From assembly GCA_047495785.1 (NCBI GenBank), contig JBLDXI010000032.1, positions 496,001 through 560,000 on the forward strand: a stretch of DNA of 64,000 bases, in the 5' to 3' direction. This document shows, piece after piece, positions 31,517 through 37,049 of this stretch. This stretch comes from Lepidodermella squamata (Eukaryota > Animalia > Gastrotricha). The notes beneath the pieces are model-generated. The model did no database searches. It saw only the letters and a list, made by a program, of their open reading frames with translations, and was not told where the DNA came from. How positions within the stretch are numbered: position 1 is the stretch's first letter; each line of letters begins with the position of its first letter. The translations under genes and the position numbers were made by a program.

Positions 31517-32373
31517 TGCTCTTTGATAAAGTCTTGAAGAGTATTCCTCAGATCGTCTTATTTACTACGAAATTTAAACTCTAGTGTCGTTGATTTCGAA
31601 ATTGCGAAGTGTCGCCAGCGATACTGAAGATAAGAATAAGATGTTTGGCTAGGAGCGAAGCCTCATGATGCAACAACTTTATGAATGAATAAAAGAAGGA
31701 AATTTTTTTCACATATTGTGAGCGCGTGCGTAACTGCACATCTGGTTCCTCTGCGCTATGTTCTAATAATTTTAAACCGGGTGAGACTTTTTTCATCAGA
31801 CATATGTCTTGAAATATTATCATCCGACGACCTAAAATGTGGCTTAAAAAACCGACAGCAATTGCTATTCGAACCCAAGTTTTCACTGAATTTTCGCAAA
31901 TTAAGGAAATTTAAGAGGGACTCGGCGGTCGTGGTATCGAAAAATAGTGAAGTAGATATCGATGCCGGCAAAGGGTCATAGGGTTGGGATTATGTTTGAG
32001 CTAGAAAAAACCATTCAAAGTCAGGCCTTCGAACACTAAGGAATCCATTTTACGTCACAGGACGTCATTTTGGTGTCCAGATTCTTTCAGTTTTAATTTC
32101 CTTAATTCGCTTTCATGATAATTTCATGATACTTATTTCGGATCTATTCGGATCTATAATATCGCGGCTCTTTTTTTCTTTGCACAATTTTTGGCAGGTT
32201 GCTATACGGCCGCACGGAAAATCCAAGATTTCTGAATGCAGGAATTTATTCAAAATCATATTAGTAAATCACAAAAAAATCATCAGTGGCTTTGCAACAA
32301 GTAGTTATGATTTTATATGATCCATTGTGATTGGGGTGATTTCAGAGTTCATTCGACATCCAAGCCTCACTGT

Positions 32374-33513
32374 CTATTTCTTGCAGCAAGAACCGCCCGG
32401 GCATTTGCACTCGCCAGGCTTGCAGTTGCAAGAAGTACACTTCCCGCTGGCGTCTTTTTTGCAACAAGGCCCATCGGGACATTTGCAGGTGTCAGGAGAG
32501 CAGCCGTCACAGCACTGCTTCTTGCAACACGAACCATCGGAACACTTACATTCACCAGGGGCACAAGAGCACTTGCCACATTTACCAGTTCCTTGCTTCT
32601 TGCAACAAGAATCAGCCGGGCACTTGCACTCCCCTGGTGGGCAGTCTTTGCAACACTCCTTCTTGCAGCACGACCCCTTGGAGCATTTACATTCGCCAGG
32701 CGGGCAGTTGCATTTTCCACACTTGCCATGGCCTTCTTTCTTGCAGCAGGATTTTCCAGGACACTTGCATTGACCAGCGGGGCAGTTGCATTTACCGCAT
32801 TTGCCTCCATTCTTGCAGCACGACTCGGGCGGGCATTTACATTCACCAGGTGGGCAATCCTTGCAACAATCAGCTTTGCAACACGAACCCTTGGAGCATT
32901 TACATTCGCCAGGCGGGCAGTTGCATTTTCCACACTTGCCATGGTCTTCCTTCTTGCAGCACGAATCAGCCGGACATTTGCATTCCCCAGGTGGGCATCC
33001 TTTGCAACAGTCCTTCTTGCAGCACGACCCCTTGGAGCATTTACACTCGCCGGGCGGGCAGTTGCATTTTCCACACTTGCCATGGCCTTCCTTCTTGCAG
33101 CACGAATCAGCCGGACATTTGCATTCACCGGGTGGGCAACCCTTGCAGCAGTCCTTCTTGCAGCATGAATTCGCAGGGCATTTACATTCCCCAGGTGGGC
33201 AGTTGCACTTTCCACATTTACCCTTCTTGCAGCAGGATTCAGGTGGGCACTTGCATTCGCCGGGCGGGCAGTCTTTGCAGCAATCGTTGTGGCAACCAGA
33301 TTCGTGTTTGCACTTGCAGTCACATGGCTTGCAGTTCTTGCAGCAATCTGTTCTGCAGCACGAATTGGCTGGGCATTTGCATTCGCCAGGCTTGCAGTTA
33401 CATTTGCCACATTCGTGATTGGCGTTTCCCTTGCAGCAAGAGCCTTCGGGACATTTGCATTGGCCATCTTGGCAACCATTCTTGCAACATTGCTTTTCGT
33501 TGTTTCCAGACAT
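32374..33513 (-). CDS. Giant multi-module metallothionein-like protein (379 aa, 112 Cys)
   Basis: Intronless ATG-to-TAG ORF with ~30% Cys in CC, CxC and CxxC motifs. Rich in Lys/Gly/Pro, with no aromatic residues and no signal peptide; 16 seven-Cys repeats. Confidence 0.85.
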   Translation of the reverse strand: MSGNNEKQCCKNGCQDGQCKCPEGSCCKGNANHECGKCNCKPGECKCPANSCCRTDCCKNCKPCDCKCKHESGCHNDCCKDCPPGECKCPPESCCKKGKCGKCNCPPGECKCPANSCCKKDCCKGCPPGECKCPADSCCKKEGHGKCGKCNCPPGECKCSKGSCCKKDCCKGCPPGECKCPADSCCKKEDHGKCGKCNCPPGECKCSKGSCCKADCCKDCPPGECKCPPESCCKNGGKCGKCNCPAGQCKCPGKSCCKKEGHGKCGKCNCPPGECKCSKGSCCKKECCKDCPPGECKCPADSCCKKQGTGKCGKCSCAPGECKCSDGSCCKKQCCDGCSPDTCKCPDGPCCKKDASGKCTSCNCKPGECKCPGGSCCKK

Positions 33514-33978
33514 TTCAGAGCGATTGAATACTTTAATTCAGGACAATGAAAATTAGGTGAGTGATATAATGCTATTGTTTTGACTGTTCTTATGGGGTGT
33601 CAGAAGGTTTTATCGTTCTCGAACATTCTTAGAACATACGTGGGTGGGTTGATAAAACGACGCCTGTCATTGTTTACTCCCAAAGGTTAATGCTCAAAAT
33701 AGCGCCGCAAACTCGGTTTATTCGCTTCACAGAGTTTGTTTATGCCCGTATTAATCGGTGTGGCTTGAGTCTGTAAACGACACGACGTTCAGCTGTCTAA
33801 TCTCTTGCTGAAACTGTCTGCTGATACCATTTTTTGAAAACATGCCACAGGCACCTGGTTAAGACTAGCAAATGAGAACAAGAAAAAGTGTTTATGCACG
33901 CTGAATTTATTGCAGGAGATGAATCCTTGATGAATCAGACTTCAAAATGTTCATTTATGAGCCTATTTCCGCCCATTT

Positions 33979-36373
33979 TCATGCAGCATTGCTAGCTGTG
34001 CGCGATTTCGGCTGCGCAAAGCCGACTTTTTTCCCTAACGATGGTGCCGCTAAAATAATGGATGTGAGTACTGAACTCAACATCAGAGTGATGCTTATTG
34101 TCCCATTCTGCGCCGAAGGATGGTTGTCGAATCCGAACAGAAGCAAAACAGCAGCGGCGAATAATGTTAAAAAGTTAAACTGCACTCTTCGCATCGGATT
34201 CATCTCAGGTATCAAAACATCGACTCTTTTGATGCCGGAAATTGCCTTCAGGGAAAAAGCTATCACTGATCCGATGACAAGCATAATCAGGTGAACGGCG
34301 ACTAATGTCCCCAACCACGCGGAAAAAGCATCAGAACTACATGAACCTTCTACAACGGCCACAAACAGGTCTTTATCACTGTCATAAAAGCTGGAAACGT
34401 TGCGAAAATGTAATTTGAGAGGGTCGCTTAAGAACCATATCGTCAGAAACGCGATGTTTGCGAATGTGAATAAGAGTGCACTTTGTGAACTTCTCTTGTC
34501 TTGAAGAGTTTGAATTTGCTCGGGGTACATCTTTTTCAGCCTAATTGATTTCTGCCGTTGCACCTCCGCACTGTTAATGACAAAAATGTCACTCGTCGCT
34601 GGCGTGAATACTTCACGCTGAAACAAATACGAGCGATTTGATAGATAAACTTTGAAATACAACCATAATCTGGTGCAGACAGAGCCGTGGGCGAGGGTTA
34701 AGCCTACGACGGTAAAGATGATTTTGACGTAGCACAACCGTAAATTCAGAGGATTGCTGAGATCTGTTAAGCTGACAAGACCGATTGCGAACGTTGTTGC
34801 TCCTCCATCCATTAGTAAACAAGCGAGCAAAAGGACGATTTGACTGCGCCGTAGAATCTGTTGTTTAAAATATTTTCTAACCAAATAAAAAAAGTCTCGA
34901 AATGTGACCGAAAGCCGAGAGAGCGGAAATGGCGTAAACTGAGATTGAAAGGTCGTCAGTCACATCTTTAGCAATCCTTGTGAATCGGGGCATGTCTGAC
35001 GGGACTTTCTGACCAGGCCACTCGATCTGAGTAATACTCGAAAAGGAATACATCGAGAGATTAGCCGGCTCACCGGCATTAATTTTCCCATTCAGAATCA
35101 GTGCATTCGTCAAATGAGACCAAGTTATAACCAATGTGGGGTAGCCATCCATTTCGAGTCGTTCGGAATATTTCTCGTATCCAACCCGAAGATCGCGGAA
35201 CTCAAGTTCTGCGGTGCTTTGGTTCGCGATTCGGCTCACAAGATTTGGTTGGTCGGCGTAGTCAGATAGCGTCATATTCCTCGAGATTAGGTTCATTTCA
35301 GTCTGATGTAAGGCCATCGTGGCTTGCATTACCACATCATGGCAGGGCAGCCTTCGCGGAAAGTCGGGACTATTTGGGTACATATCGTTAGTGAATTTGG
35401 CGTAGAGTTGCTCGAACCCGTCTCTATCGTAACCAAGAGAGGTATTCCCATTGTTTTCTAACAAAACGGATTGGCCGCCGATGAAAACTGAATACTTCAT
35501 TTGCTCCAATATTATGTTTCTGGTGCAGTTCTTCTTCGGATTGGTGAATGACGGTAACATGGCAGGGTCAGTGAACGTTCCGAGATAAGTGACAAAAACG
35601 TACTTAGATCCAGTCACCCCAAAGTTGAATGCTGCGCAGTAGAACTCGGTGATAGAAAACCAACGCGCTAGCACGACCATGATAATGCGAGCGTTGCTTC
35701 TTCTCAGAGATATCATCATTTCATCGGGGACATCGTTTTCGAAAGCATCTGACCAGCGAATAGCCAGTTTGTGCTTAAAAGTACCTTCGTAGAAACTTTT
35801 TGCCAACTGAAAGTCCAGGGATCGAGTTGAGGTTAGAAGTCCAACGCTTCTCCATCCCATTATGTACTTGATAAAGTAAATCCATGAGCTATGAACGATT
35901 TCTCCTGGAATTTGTTGGCGATACAAGTTAGGGGCAGCTGCTCGATTCGCAGTGAAGATTGGCGAAGCACACCCGGCTGTTACAGCTACCATATTCAATG
36001 GGGCCAAAGTCGCGGCGTACGGCAGGCAACTAGCCGATGAGCTCGGACCGATGGTTATCGGAGACTGATAGATTGTCTTGTTTTCGCTGTTTTCAAACCA
36101 TCGAATGTAGTTTATCAAGCGACTGGTTGCTAGATTTGAGTTCATGGTTTCATCTTGTATGTCAAGAACCAGGTGATAGTTTGGCAATATATCTTTCCTT
36201 GAATTAGCAACTTTAACAACGAATTCCATAGCAGCGGCACAGGCTTTCCCATCCTGAGGTTCATTACCGGTGAAGCCGACTAGAGCTAAGACAGATAACG
36301 TCTTGTTCTTTCGAGCCTGACCTGTAATCGGCGACAGAGCAGATATGGTGAGAATCAGAATGATGATGTTCAT
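33979..36373 (-). CDS. GABA-B-like class C GPCR no.1 (frameshifted at a T7 run: pseudogene or sequencing error)
   Basis: Signal peptide plus Venus flytrap domain (DILPNYHL, PNLYR) in the 523-aa ORF, and TM2-7 in the 301-aa ORF. The frames join if one base is removed from the A-run at 34887-34893. Confidence 0.85.
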
Positions 36374-37049
36374 CTTGTGAGCATAAATTAATGCAACCGA
36401 AATTTTGAACATGTGCGTGAAATAACCCTCGTAAGTCATAAGTGACACTTATTTATGTGTTCGCTTAACTTCTTCCGGCAACATGTTCAATGCATCATCT
36501 CAGTTTCGAGGGCAAGCGTTGGAGATTGCGTTGGCATTTCGTTGAAGTTCCGTTTCGCGTTACATTTCTACTTAGTCTGATGAATTTGATTTGCTTCAGA
36601 ATTATTGAAGCTGGATGATTCAGCATGCATGGATGAGAAAAACGGGCTCTCACGTCTCGCGTTGTTTCGAACTGTAGTAAAGGATAAGTTTCAAAATGAC
36701 TAAAACCATGGTAGCGTCATCGCTGTCTAACCCTGTGAAACCTTACCCTAAAGTAAGCTATAGTCCGTGATCATTATGCAGTGTTTTATTTCAGTGCGCA
36801 TTGCGATTGAAACACAGCCTAATTCGAATGTGTGCGGGTTTTCGCAAAAATGCCAGGACAACACGTGAGAACTGACGGCAGCGTACATTGATACTACGAT
36901 TTACCTACCATGAAGTTTAACACATGTTTATGTCTAACTATGAGCGAATGAACATCGGGCTATCGCACCAGATATTGCGGACTGCGTTACCGACAGGTAA
37001 TTTGAAATGCAACCGACTAATTATTCGCGTTCTCGGGGCGATCTACTCG

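Follow-up and report, generated by a model that had tools for sequence, protein, structure and literature searches.

What kind of protein is 30% cysteine, is built almost entirely of repeats and has no detectable relative? The question is raised by a locus of the gastrotrich Lepidodermella squamata that lies in a 64-kb stretch of contig JBLDXI010000032.1 (C32:496001-560000; this whole stretch of analysed DNA is called the window below). Its minus strand carries an uninterrupted open reading frame (ORF) from ATG to TAG, 32374-33513 (-), with a predicted product of 379 amino acids that includes 112 Cys (29.6%). We conclude, with a probability of roughly three in four, that this is a functional, intronless, cytosolic metallothionein (MT) gene of a new, lineage-specific family. 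Metallothionein is used here as an operational class and not as the name of a homologous family.

Modular architecture of the predicted protein

An in-frame TGA lies nine codons 5' of the ATG. The product has a predicted mass of 39.2 kDa and is rich in four residues (C 30%, K 19%, G 13%, P 10%), with 71 Lys, 48 Gly, 38 Pro, 17 Asn (K:N 71:17), 6 His and one Arg. Phe, Trp, Tyr, Leu, Ile and Val are absent altogether, and the only Met is the initiator. The sequence contains 25 CxC, 23 CC, 16 CxxC and 16 CKC motifs, and Lys stands next to Cys 71 times. Because there is no hydrophobic stretch, neither a signal peptide nor a membrane anchor is possible, and the protein should, judging from its composition, stay reduced in the cytosol.

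When the protein is cut behind each terminal CC it falls into 16 modules of seven Cys each, arranged in the order A-B-A'-A-B-A-B-A-B-A-B-B-A-B-A-B. Type A modules have the Cys spacing CC-2-C-4-CxC-4-CC and type B modules the spacing C-2-CxC-4-CxC-4-CC. Module 3 (A') is irregular (CC-2-C-2-CxCxC-5-C), and short KK or KKx linkers sit between modules. Five canonical B+A pairs are present, and the remaining six modules include the irregular A' and a B-B junction. The original prediction, made from this DNA without database searches, had given the length, the number of Cys, the 16 seven-Cys modules and their order, and for the window copy everything in it that can be counted is correct.

Over the gene, Tandem Repeats Finder detects repeats with periods of 141, 213 and 78 nt. 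Based on DNA identity, central modules of the same type are 91–96% identical (93–96% among modules 7, 9 and 12, and 91% between modules 6 and 8), and the value for entire B+A units, 7+8 against 9+10, is 86.5%. The terminal modules are 54–81% identical to others, and all seven Cys are retained even in terminal modules for which this value is only 54–65%. The divergence of the ends had been predicted and is borne out by these values, whereas the predicted near-identity of the central units was overstated.

AlphaFold2, run on the single sequence, returned no confident fold (mean predicted local distance difference test score 49, predicted template modelling score 0.25). The low confidence matches what would be expected of a metal-free thionein, although with single-sequence input it says little and is weak evidence.

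Reading frame and selection

Four other ORFs of 210–370 amino acids overlap the gene region on both strands. These rival frames are open because the DNA is repetitive, and the coding frame therefore needed testing. A second copy of the gene, encoding 332 amino acids, is located on another contig (C7:1818602-1819600) of the assembly used for searches of the animal's own genome (121.2 Mb in 151 contigs, GC content ~43%). Only the Cys-rich frame begins with ATG, runs the full length and has the same extent in both copies.

The window copy and the C7 copy differ at 32 of 996 aligned bases (3.2%). By codon position, third, first and second, the differences are distributed 26:4:2 (chi-square p = 6e-8). 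Of these changes 25 are synonymous and seven non-synonymous, giving a synonymous divergence (dS) of 0.151, a non-synonymous divergence (dN) of 0.0087 and a dN/dS of 0.057. Five neighbouring gene pairs from the same duplicated block have dN/dS values of 0.09–0.25 (dS 0.03–0.18). The giant gene thus has the lowest ratio among the six gene pairs of the block, and its Cys-rich frame is the most constrained of the neighbourhood. By these measures the Cys-rich frame is confirmed as the coding frame and is under strong purifying selection.

A second copy and the history of the repeats

At the protein level the two copies are separated by one clean gap of 47 amino acids, which corresponds to one B+A unit, and by seven substitutions. 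The underlying indel is exactly 141 nt and in frame. Two of the seven substitutions, C9R and C64G, each cost the C7 copy a Cys, so that it has 96 Cys in 14 modules. In the C7 copy module 3 is spaced like a regular A module, but its final doublet is short of one Cys, which leaves six; in its window counterpart residue 64 has changed from Gly to Cys, and the count is seven again. The rule of exactly seven Cys per module accordingly holds for the window copy but not for its sister.

The lone C7 unit is 97.9% identical to unit 9+10 of the window copy and 85.8% identical to unit 7+8, and the first discriminating site is the only one at which it agrees with unit 7. Units 7+8 and 9+10 pre-date the split of the two copies, because they are 13.5% apart compared with 3.2% between the copies. 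It follows that unequal recombination close to where a B module starts removed one unit from the C7 copy, and that the window copy gained none. This bears on the proposal that the array had expanded recently. Its central units differ by 4–14%, more than the 3.2% that separates the genomic copies, and since that split the array has changed only by the loss of a unit from the C7 copy; a recent expansion was therefore an overstatement. The proposal had also left a choice between building blocks of seven and of 14 Cys. Since the two copies differ by exactly one B+A unit, the 14-Cys pair is favoured as the unit of change. The seven-Cys block is present 16 times here, but is not new as such, being known from fungal MTs and from Oikopleura.

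The second copy lies within a larger duplication. Positions 14989-57671 of the window are collinear, in inverted orientation, with C7:1790000-1840000 at 85–96% identity. The partner of a probe from C32:200-204 kb lies near C7:2.173 Mb, and a probe at C32:900 kb has none. Both contigs are ~4.5 Mb long. The collinear block measures at least 360 kb, and the multi-megabase contigs around it are otherwise unrelated, which fits a large and young segmental duplication better than a pair of haplotigs.

A third relative is present near C7:1256826-1256996 (L004:1393-1677 (-)). It is an ORF of 94 amino acids with 19 Cys and the same MSGN-EKQ start. It has one intact B module together with pieces of A modules and has gained Leu, Ile, Tyr and Arg; this short copy is probably decaying. 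When a profile of the B+A unit was run over the animal's own genome, only the two large copies and the short one were recovered. A further own-genome match, on C25, was spurious.

The original prediction had allowed that the number of repeats might be an artefact of assembly. The published L. squamata assembly was made from HiFi reads averaging 13.4 kb, obtained from the amplified DNA of one animal, and its primary version comprises 122.8 Mb in 157 contigs (GC 43.28%, N50 3.9 Mb, heterozygosity 2.99%) (PMC11660948). An artefact is unlikely, because two independent genomic copies have the architecture in common and because, if the genome searched here is this published assembly, its reads of 13.4 kb span a gene of 1.1 kb.

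Searches for relatives

No Pfam family was matched at E ≤ 10 by the whole protein or by pieces of 47, 94 and 95 amino acids, and thus no MT family, no keratin-associated family and no cuticle family. The chain sequences of the PDB likewise gave no match at E ≤ 10, and the ESM Atlas gave no usable match. Among 5.8 billion proteins, a word-index search with the full protein gave one weak match (P0001), and one with a 94-amino-acid piece gave none. An exhaustive HMMER search of 1.84 billion representative proteins returned a single match, P0002 (E = 7e-4), and no true relative; P0002 is an unrelated repeat protein of the EGF/FN3 type, and the match is spurious. A pattern scan and a profile scan of metagenome DNA yielded only P0001 again.

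P0001 (SDBT01794285.1; L005/L017) is a protein of 212 amino acids from a deep-sea sediment metagenome, in which an N-terminal MT-like region (CGNCNCAPGACKC) with PGECKC repeats is fused to a rhodanese domain. It shares the motifs CGxCNCxPGxCKC and PGECKC with the gastrotrich protein but has no CC doublets, aligns only with many gaps and carries the rhodanese fusion; we therefore rejected it as a relative and regard the resemblance as convergent. In its own right it appears to be an unusual fusion for the handling of metal or sulfur in an uncultured organism.

The L. squamata genome paper does not mention MTs (PMC11660948), and a literature search found no paper on gastrotrich MTs. Homology searches, which the original prediction had suggested for single modules, thus found no true relative of the protein or its pieces. 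The proposal of a new modular family is a fair one, as neither a known MT family nor any other protein is detectably related.

Promoter and codon usage

A heat-shock element consists of three contiguous inverted nGAAn units and drives the yeast MT gene CUP1 (PMC10815948). A three-unit element of this type, GAAtgTTCgaGAA, precedes the gene in both copies. There are four such sites in the 64-kb window and two in 50 kb of C7. A reading as a perfect four-unit element was rejected, because its fourth unit is shifted by one base. Compared with neighbouring genes, codons are shifted toward C or G endings (TGC 72% vs 64%, AAG 59% vs 40%, AAC 71% vs 49%), which is a weak hint at high expression.

Probable assignment to the metallothioneins and alternative explanations

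The composition and motifs of the protein agree with those by which MTs are usually recognized. Cysteines make up 29.6% of the residues, within the expected range of ~15–35%, and are arranged in CxC, CC and CxxC motifs (25, 23 and 16). Aromatic residues are absent, as are Leu, Ile and Val, and there is little His.

Several observations weigh against the assignment. With 39.2 kDa the protein is far from the low mass of MTs, classically <10 kDa, a limit that accepted multimodular MTs of 257–399 amino acids likewise exceed (PMC8283569; PMC4755600). As neither a Pfam MT family nor a solved MT was matched at E ≤ 10, the assignment follows from composition and motif logic and not from homology. Transcription, translation and metal binding are predictions. 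There is no metal-response core (TGCRCNC) within 380 bp of the ATG; three occur further upstream, none of which is conserved in the C7 copy. Finally, at the local density of heat-shock elements the chance of finding one in a promoter of 300 bp is ~2%, and a single element could be due to chance.

The alternative that survives best, though we consider it improbable, is that the protein is a cytosolic thiol reservoir for which metal is not the main job; induced by general stress, it could be sacrificed to buffer redox changes or radicals, or could store cysteine or sulfur. A heat-shock element in a promoter that has no proximal metal-response element would suit such a role, as would a Cys content of 30% in a protein that does not fold by itself. 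A mere store would have no need, however, of the strict CxC and CC spacing that is kept across diverged modules and that corresponds to the geometry of metal clusters. Known MTs also scavenge radicals, so that this alternative overlaps with the MT assignment and does not replace it. Sequence cannot separate a general thiol or redox buffer from a metallothionein.

Slightly less probable still is a structural protein hardened by disulfides, either of the keratin-associated ultra-high-sulfur type or from a cuticle or scale matrix, a possibility that the original prediction had itself named. Lepidodermella bears cuticular scales, and a very high Cys content and a repetitive architecture would be in keeping with such a protein. 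Secretion into the cuticle is implausible, however, for a protein that lacks both a signal peptide and hydrophobic residues of any kind, and the Pfam search gave no match to keratin-associated or cuticle families. High-sulfur structural proteins are rich in Ser, Pro, Gln and Arg, whereas this protein is rich in Lys, Gly, Pro and Glu and has a single Arg; its richness in Lys and in Glu or Asp, together with the CKC motifs, is typical of MTs.

We regard as very unlikely a polyprotein precursor that is cut at KK sites into sixteen small Cys-rich peptides, for example antimicrobial or toxin-like ones. The KK and KKx linkers do resemble dibasic processing sites, but Lys is plentiful within the modules as well, the odd number of Cys per module is awkward for an all-disulfide peptide, and processing of this kind takes place in the secretory pathway, which the protein could not enter for want of a signal peptide. 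Just as hard to credit is a tandem repeat that is not translated or has no function and is open by accident, for which the four overlapping ORFs on both strands might speak. Against it stand the Cys-rich frame, which alone begins with ATG and is full-length and of the same extent in the two copies, the concentration of changes at third positions, the low dN/dS and an indel that is in frame.

Comparison with known modular metallothioneins

Giant modular MTs have been reported only from some chordates, molluscs and fungi (PMC11645667, a paper of 2024), and, when reports are combined, from ciliates as well (PMC4755600). OdiMT2 of Oikopleura dioica has 399 amino acids and 123 Cys (31%), with 3–7 repeat units across populations (PMC8283569). 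Like the gastrotrich protein it is a giant made of tandem units, each of which pairs a trimmed seven-Cys domain with a second domain (PMC8283569; PMC8476144), and whole pairs are gained or lost between its populations much as one pair distinguishes the two copies here. Its units combine 12 and seven Cys (CX3Cx2Cx2Cx3Cx2[CxC]x2Cx4[CxC]xCC), whereas those of L. squamata consist of two seven-Cys modules that both end in CC. In addition, the OdiMT2 gene has introns, and the proteins have no detectable sequence similarity. Because the two animals belong to different phyla, the origins are taken to be independent.

BscMT1 of Botryllus schlosseri has 365 amino acids, of which 105 (29%) are Cys, comprises nine tandem domains and has been found experimentally to bind 36 divalent ions (Zn). 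In the ascidian 12-Cys domain, the final seven Cys (Cx2[CxC]x4[CxC]x3-6CC) are spaced as in type B. The unit of BscMT1 has 12 Cys, however, type A modules are missing from it and no sequence similarity is detectable; the match in spacing is probably convergent. Neither type A nor type B conforms to the tunicate 12-Cys domain pattern.

The fungal seven-Cys Cu-thioneins (Neurospora MT, Cryptococcus CnMT1/2, Tremella TmMT) consist of tandem seven-Cys boxes that hold 5 Cu(I) each (PMC4755600). TmMT has 57 Cys among its 257 amino acids and is encoded in 10 exons (PMC4755600). The Tremella box, CXCX3CSCPPGXCXCAXCP, shares a CxC-PPGx-CxC core with type B (CNCPPGECKC), and this core is all that the modules have in common with the fungal box. 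The latter ([CxC]x5[CxC]x3[CxC]x2C) has no CC doublets, and spacer stretches separate one box from the next. The fungal proteins are also shorter (122–257 amino acids, 23% Cys) and poor in Lys compared with the giant protein, and no homology was detected.

Among gastropods, AbiMT4 of Alinda biplicata has 319 amino acids and 85 Cys in nine beta3 domains (PMC7826182; PMC11645667). Gastropod MTs resemble the gastrotrich protein as large spiralian proteins that arose by repeated duplication of one domain. Their beta units have nine Cys in CxC motifs (Cx3Cx4[CxC]x3[CxC]x3[CxC]x2C), and no molluscan motif (PMC7826182) matches type A or type B.

Thus, giant modular MTs and seven-Cys blocks (in fungi and in the C7 subunits of Oikopleura) are already known (PMC8476144; PMC4755600). 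What is new, as far as the sequence goes, is the alternation of two seven-Cys modules that both end in CC and that are unmatched by published tunicate, molluscan and fungal motifs. New as well are the phylum, the complete lack of sequence relatives and the predicted heat-shock-type promoter.

Features of the locus and genomic context

The features of the locus are collected in Table 1. The gene is alone in a gap of 1.7 kb, with the stop codon of a class C (GABA-B-like) G-protein-coupled receptor (GPCR) 465 bp upstream and exons of a cytochrome P450 downstream.

Table 1 Features of the cysteine-rich gene and its flanks, with positions in the window
Feature	Position	Strand	Basis and remarks
Coding sequence of the Cys-rich protein, intronless, 379 codons and TAG	32374..33513	(-)	ORF, Cys modules and third-position bias relative to the C7 copy
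Modules 1-4 (A, B, A', A; amino acids 1-95), N-terminal, diverged	33229..33513	(-)	DNA identity of 54-81% between modules of the same type; Cys spacing of module 3 irregular
Modules 5-13 (B A B A B A B B A; amino acids 96-304), central array including the 141-nt B+A units	32602..33228	(-)	One B+A unit is missing here in the C7 copy
Modules 14-16 (B, A, B; amino acids 305-377), C-terminal, diverged, followed by a KK tail	32383..32601	(-)	DNA identity to other modules 54-77%; seven Cys per module all kept
Heat-shock element, perfect three-unit, GAAnnTTCnnGAA, -115 to -103 from the ATG	33616..33628	(-)	Present in both genomic copies
TATA-like TATATC, candidate core promoter, ~50 bp 5' of the ATG	33563..33568	(-)	Conserved in the C7 copy; putative function
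AATAAA polyadenylation signal, 124 nt past the stop	32245..32250	(-)	Same position in the C7 copy

The upstream neighbour is one of at least seven class C GPCR genes, mostly intronless, that lie in tandem (window 33979-62022) and encode GABA-B-like proteins of ~790–850 amino acids with ANF_receptor and 7tm_3 domains. Their best matches outside the genome are 23% identical (fish GABA-B R1). The member that adjoins the giant gene is represented by two overlapping ORFs (34877-36448 and 33979-34884), consistent with a frameshift or a tiny intron.

Other observations were made elsewhere in the genome. On C42 the gene for the largest subunit of RNA polymerase (Rpb1-type domain 1) occurs twice in inverted orientation, ~55 kb apart, at 2636640-2637660 (+) and 2691441-2692459 (-). 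The pair may be a genuine palindromic duplication, or else a chimera produced by the whole-genome amplification behind this assembly. The genome also contains more than 30 intronless lipocalin genes, most of them in one tandem cluster (C31:651980-695058, with further sites; L013-L016). The closest solved structure to the one lipocalin tested is apolipoprotein D (ApoD; E = 2.5e-11). A reading of the many PF00061 matches as tardigrade SAHS proteins was rejected; they are ApoD-like lipocalins. Searches for Chitin_bind_4 domains, nematode Str receptors, cellulose synthase and, in the assembly, mitochondrial COX1 likewise gave nothing.

Proposed mechanism and significance

Under the MT assignment, the apo-protein would be unstructured and would fold around metal ions held in clusters by Cys thiolates, with the Lys beside the Cys offsetting the negative charge of the cluster. 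In function as in evolution, the unit is probably the B+A pair (14 Cys, 47 amino acids), since it is the unit of duplication and loss and since the domains of OdiMT2 are likewise paired. The array would grow by unequal recombination of 141-nt units, and the number of units would still be changing. Transcription would probably be controlled by heat-shock factor, as part of a general stress response, rather than by a switch of MTF-1 and metal-response elements.

By analogy with characterized giant MTs, one molecule might hold ~35–40 Zn or Cd ions or up to ~80 Cu(I). Scaling from BscMT1 (36 Zn for 105 Cys) suggests a divalent load of ~38 ions, and scaling from the fungal value of 5 Cu(I) per seven-Cys box suggests a Cu(I) load of up to ~80. 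Hints at metal preference point in two directions. The K:N ratio of 71:17 would indicate Cd or Zn under the rule established for gastropods, a rule that fails in tunicates, whereas the CxC-PPGx-CxC core recalls the fungal Cu-thionein box.

More is claimed by a further reading that we put forward only tentatively, as it is rather unlikely to hold in full. In it, the gene would represent an MT family that arose de novo in gastrotrichs and the first MT of the Gastrotricha-Platyhelminthes branch. Its CC-ending seven-Cys A and B modules would form a type of metal-thiolate cluster that has not been described, its control would lie with heat-shock factor and not with MTF-1, and its load of ~40 divalent ions or ~80 Cu(I) would be among the highest per polypeptide in animals.

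MTs arose many times, and how new ones originate and become enlarged is an open question of protein evolution. The L. squamata gene adds an independent giant-MT-like case, of a size near the largest known, in a phylum with no described MT. Its sister copy captures a change in length by a single unit, which provides a natural test of how capacity depends on the number of modules and of whether the minimal autonomous cluster has seven or 14 Cys. The interest is solid for the study of MTs and of protein modularity and moderate beyond it, and for the non-specialist the surprise is moderate, not major. The protein may also be of use as a compact metal binder of high capacity.

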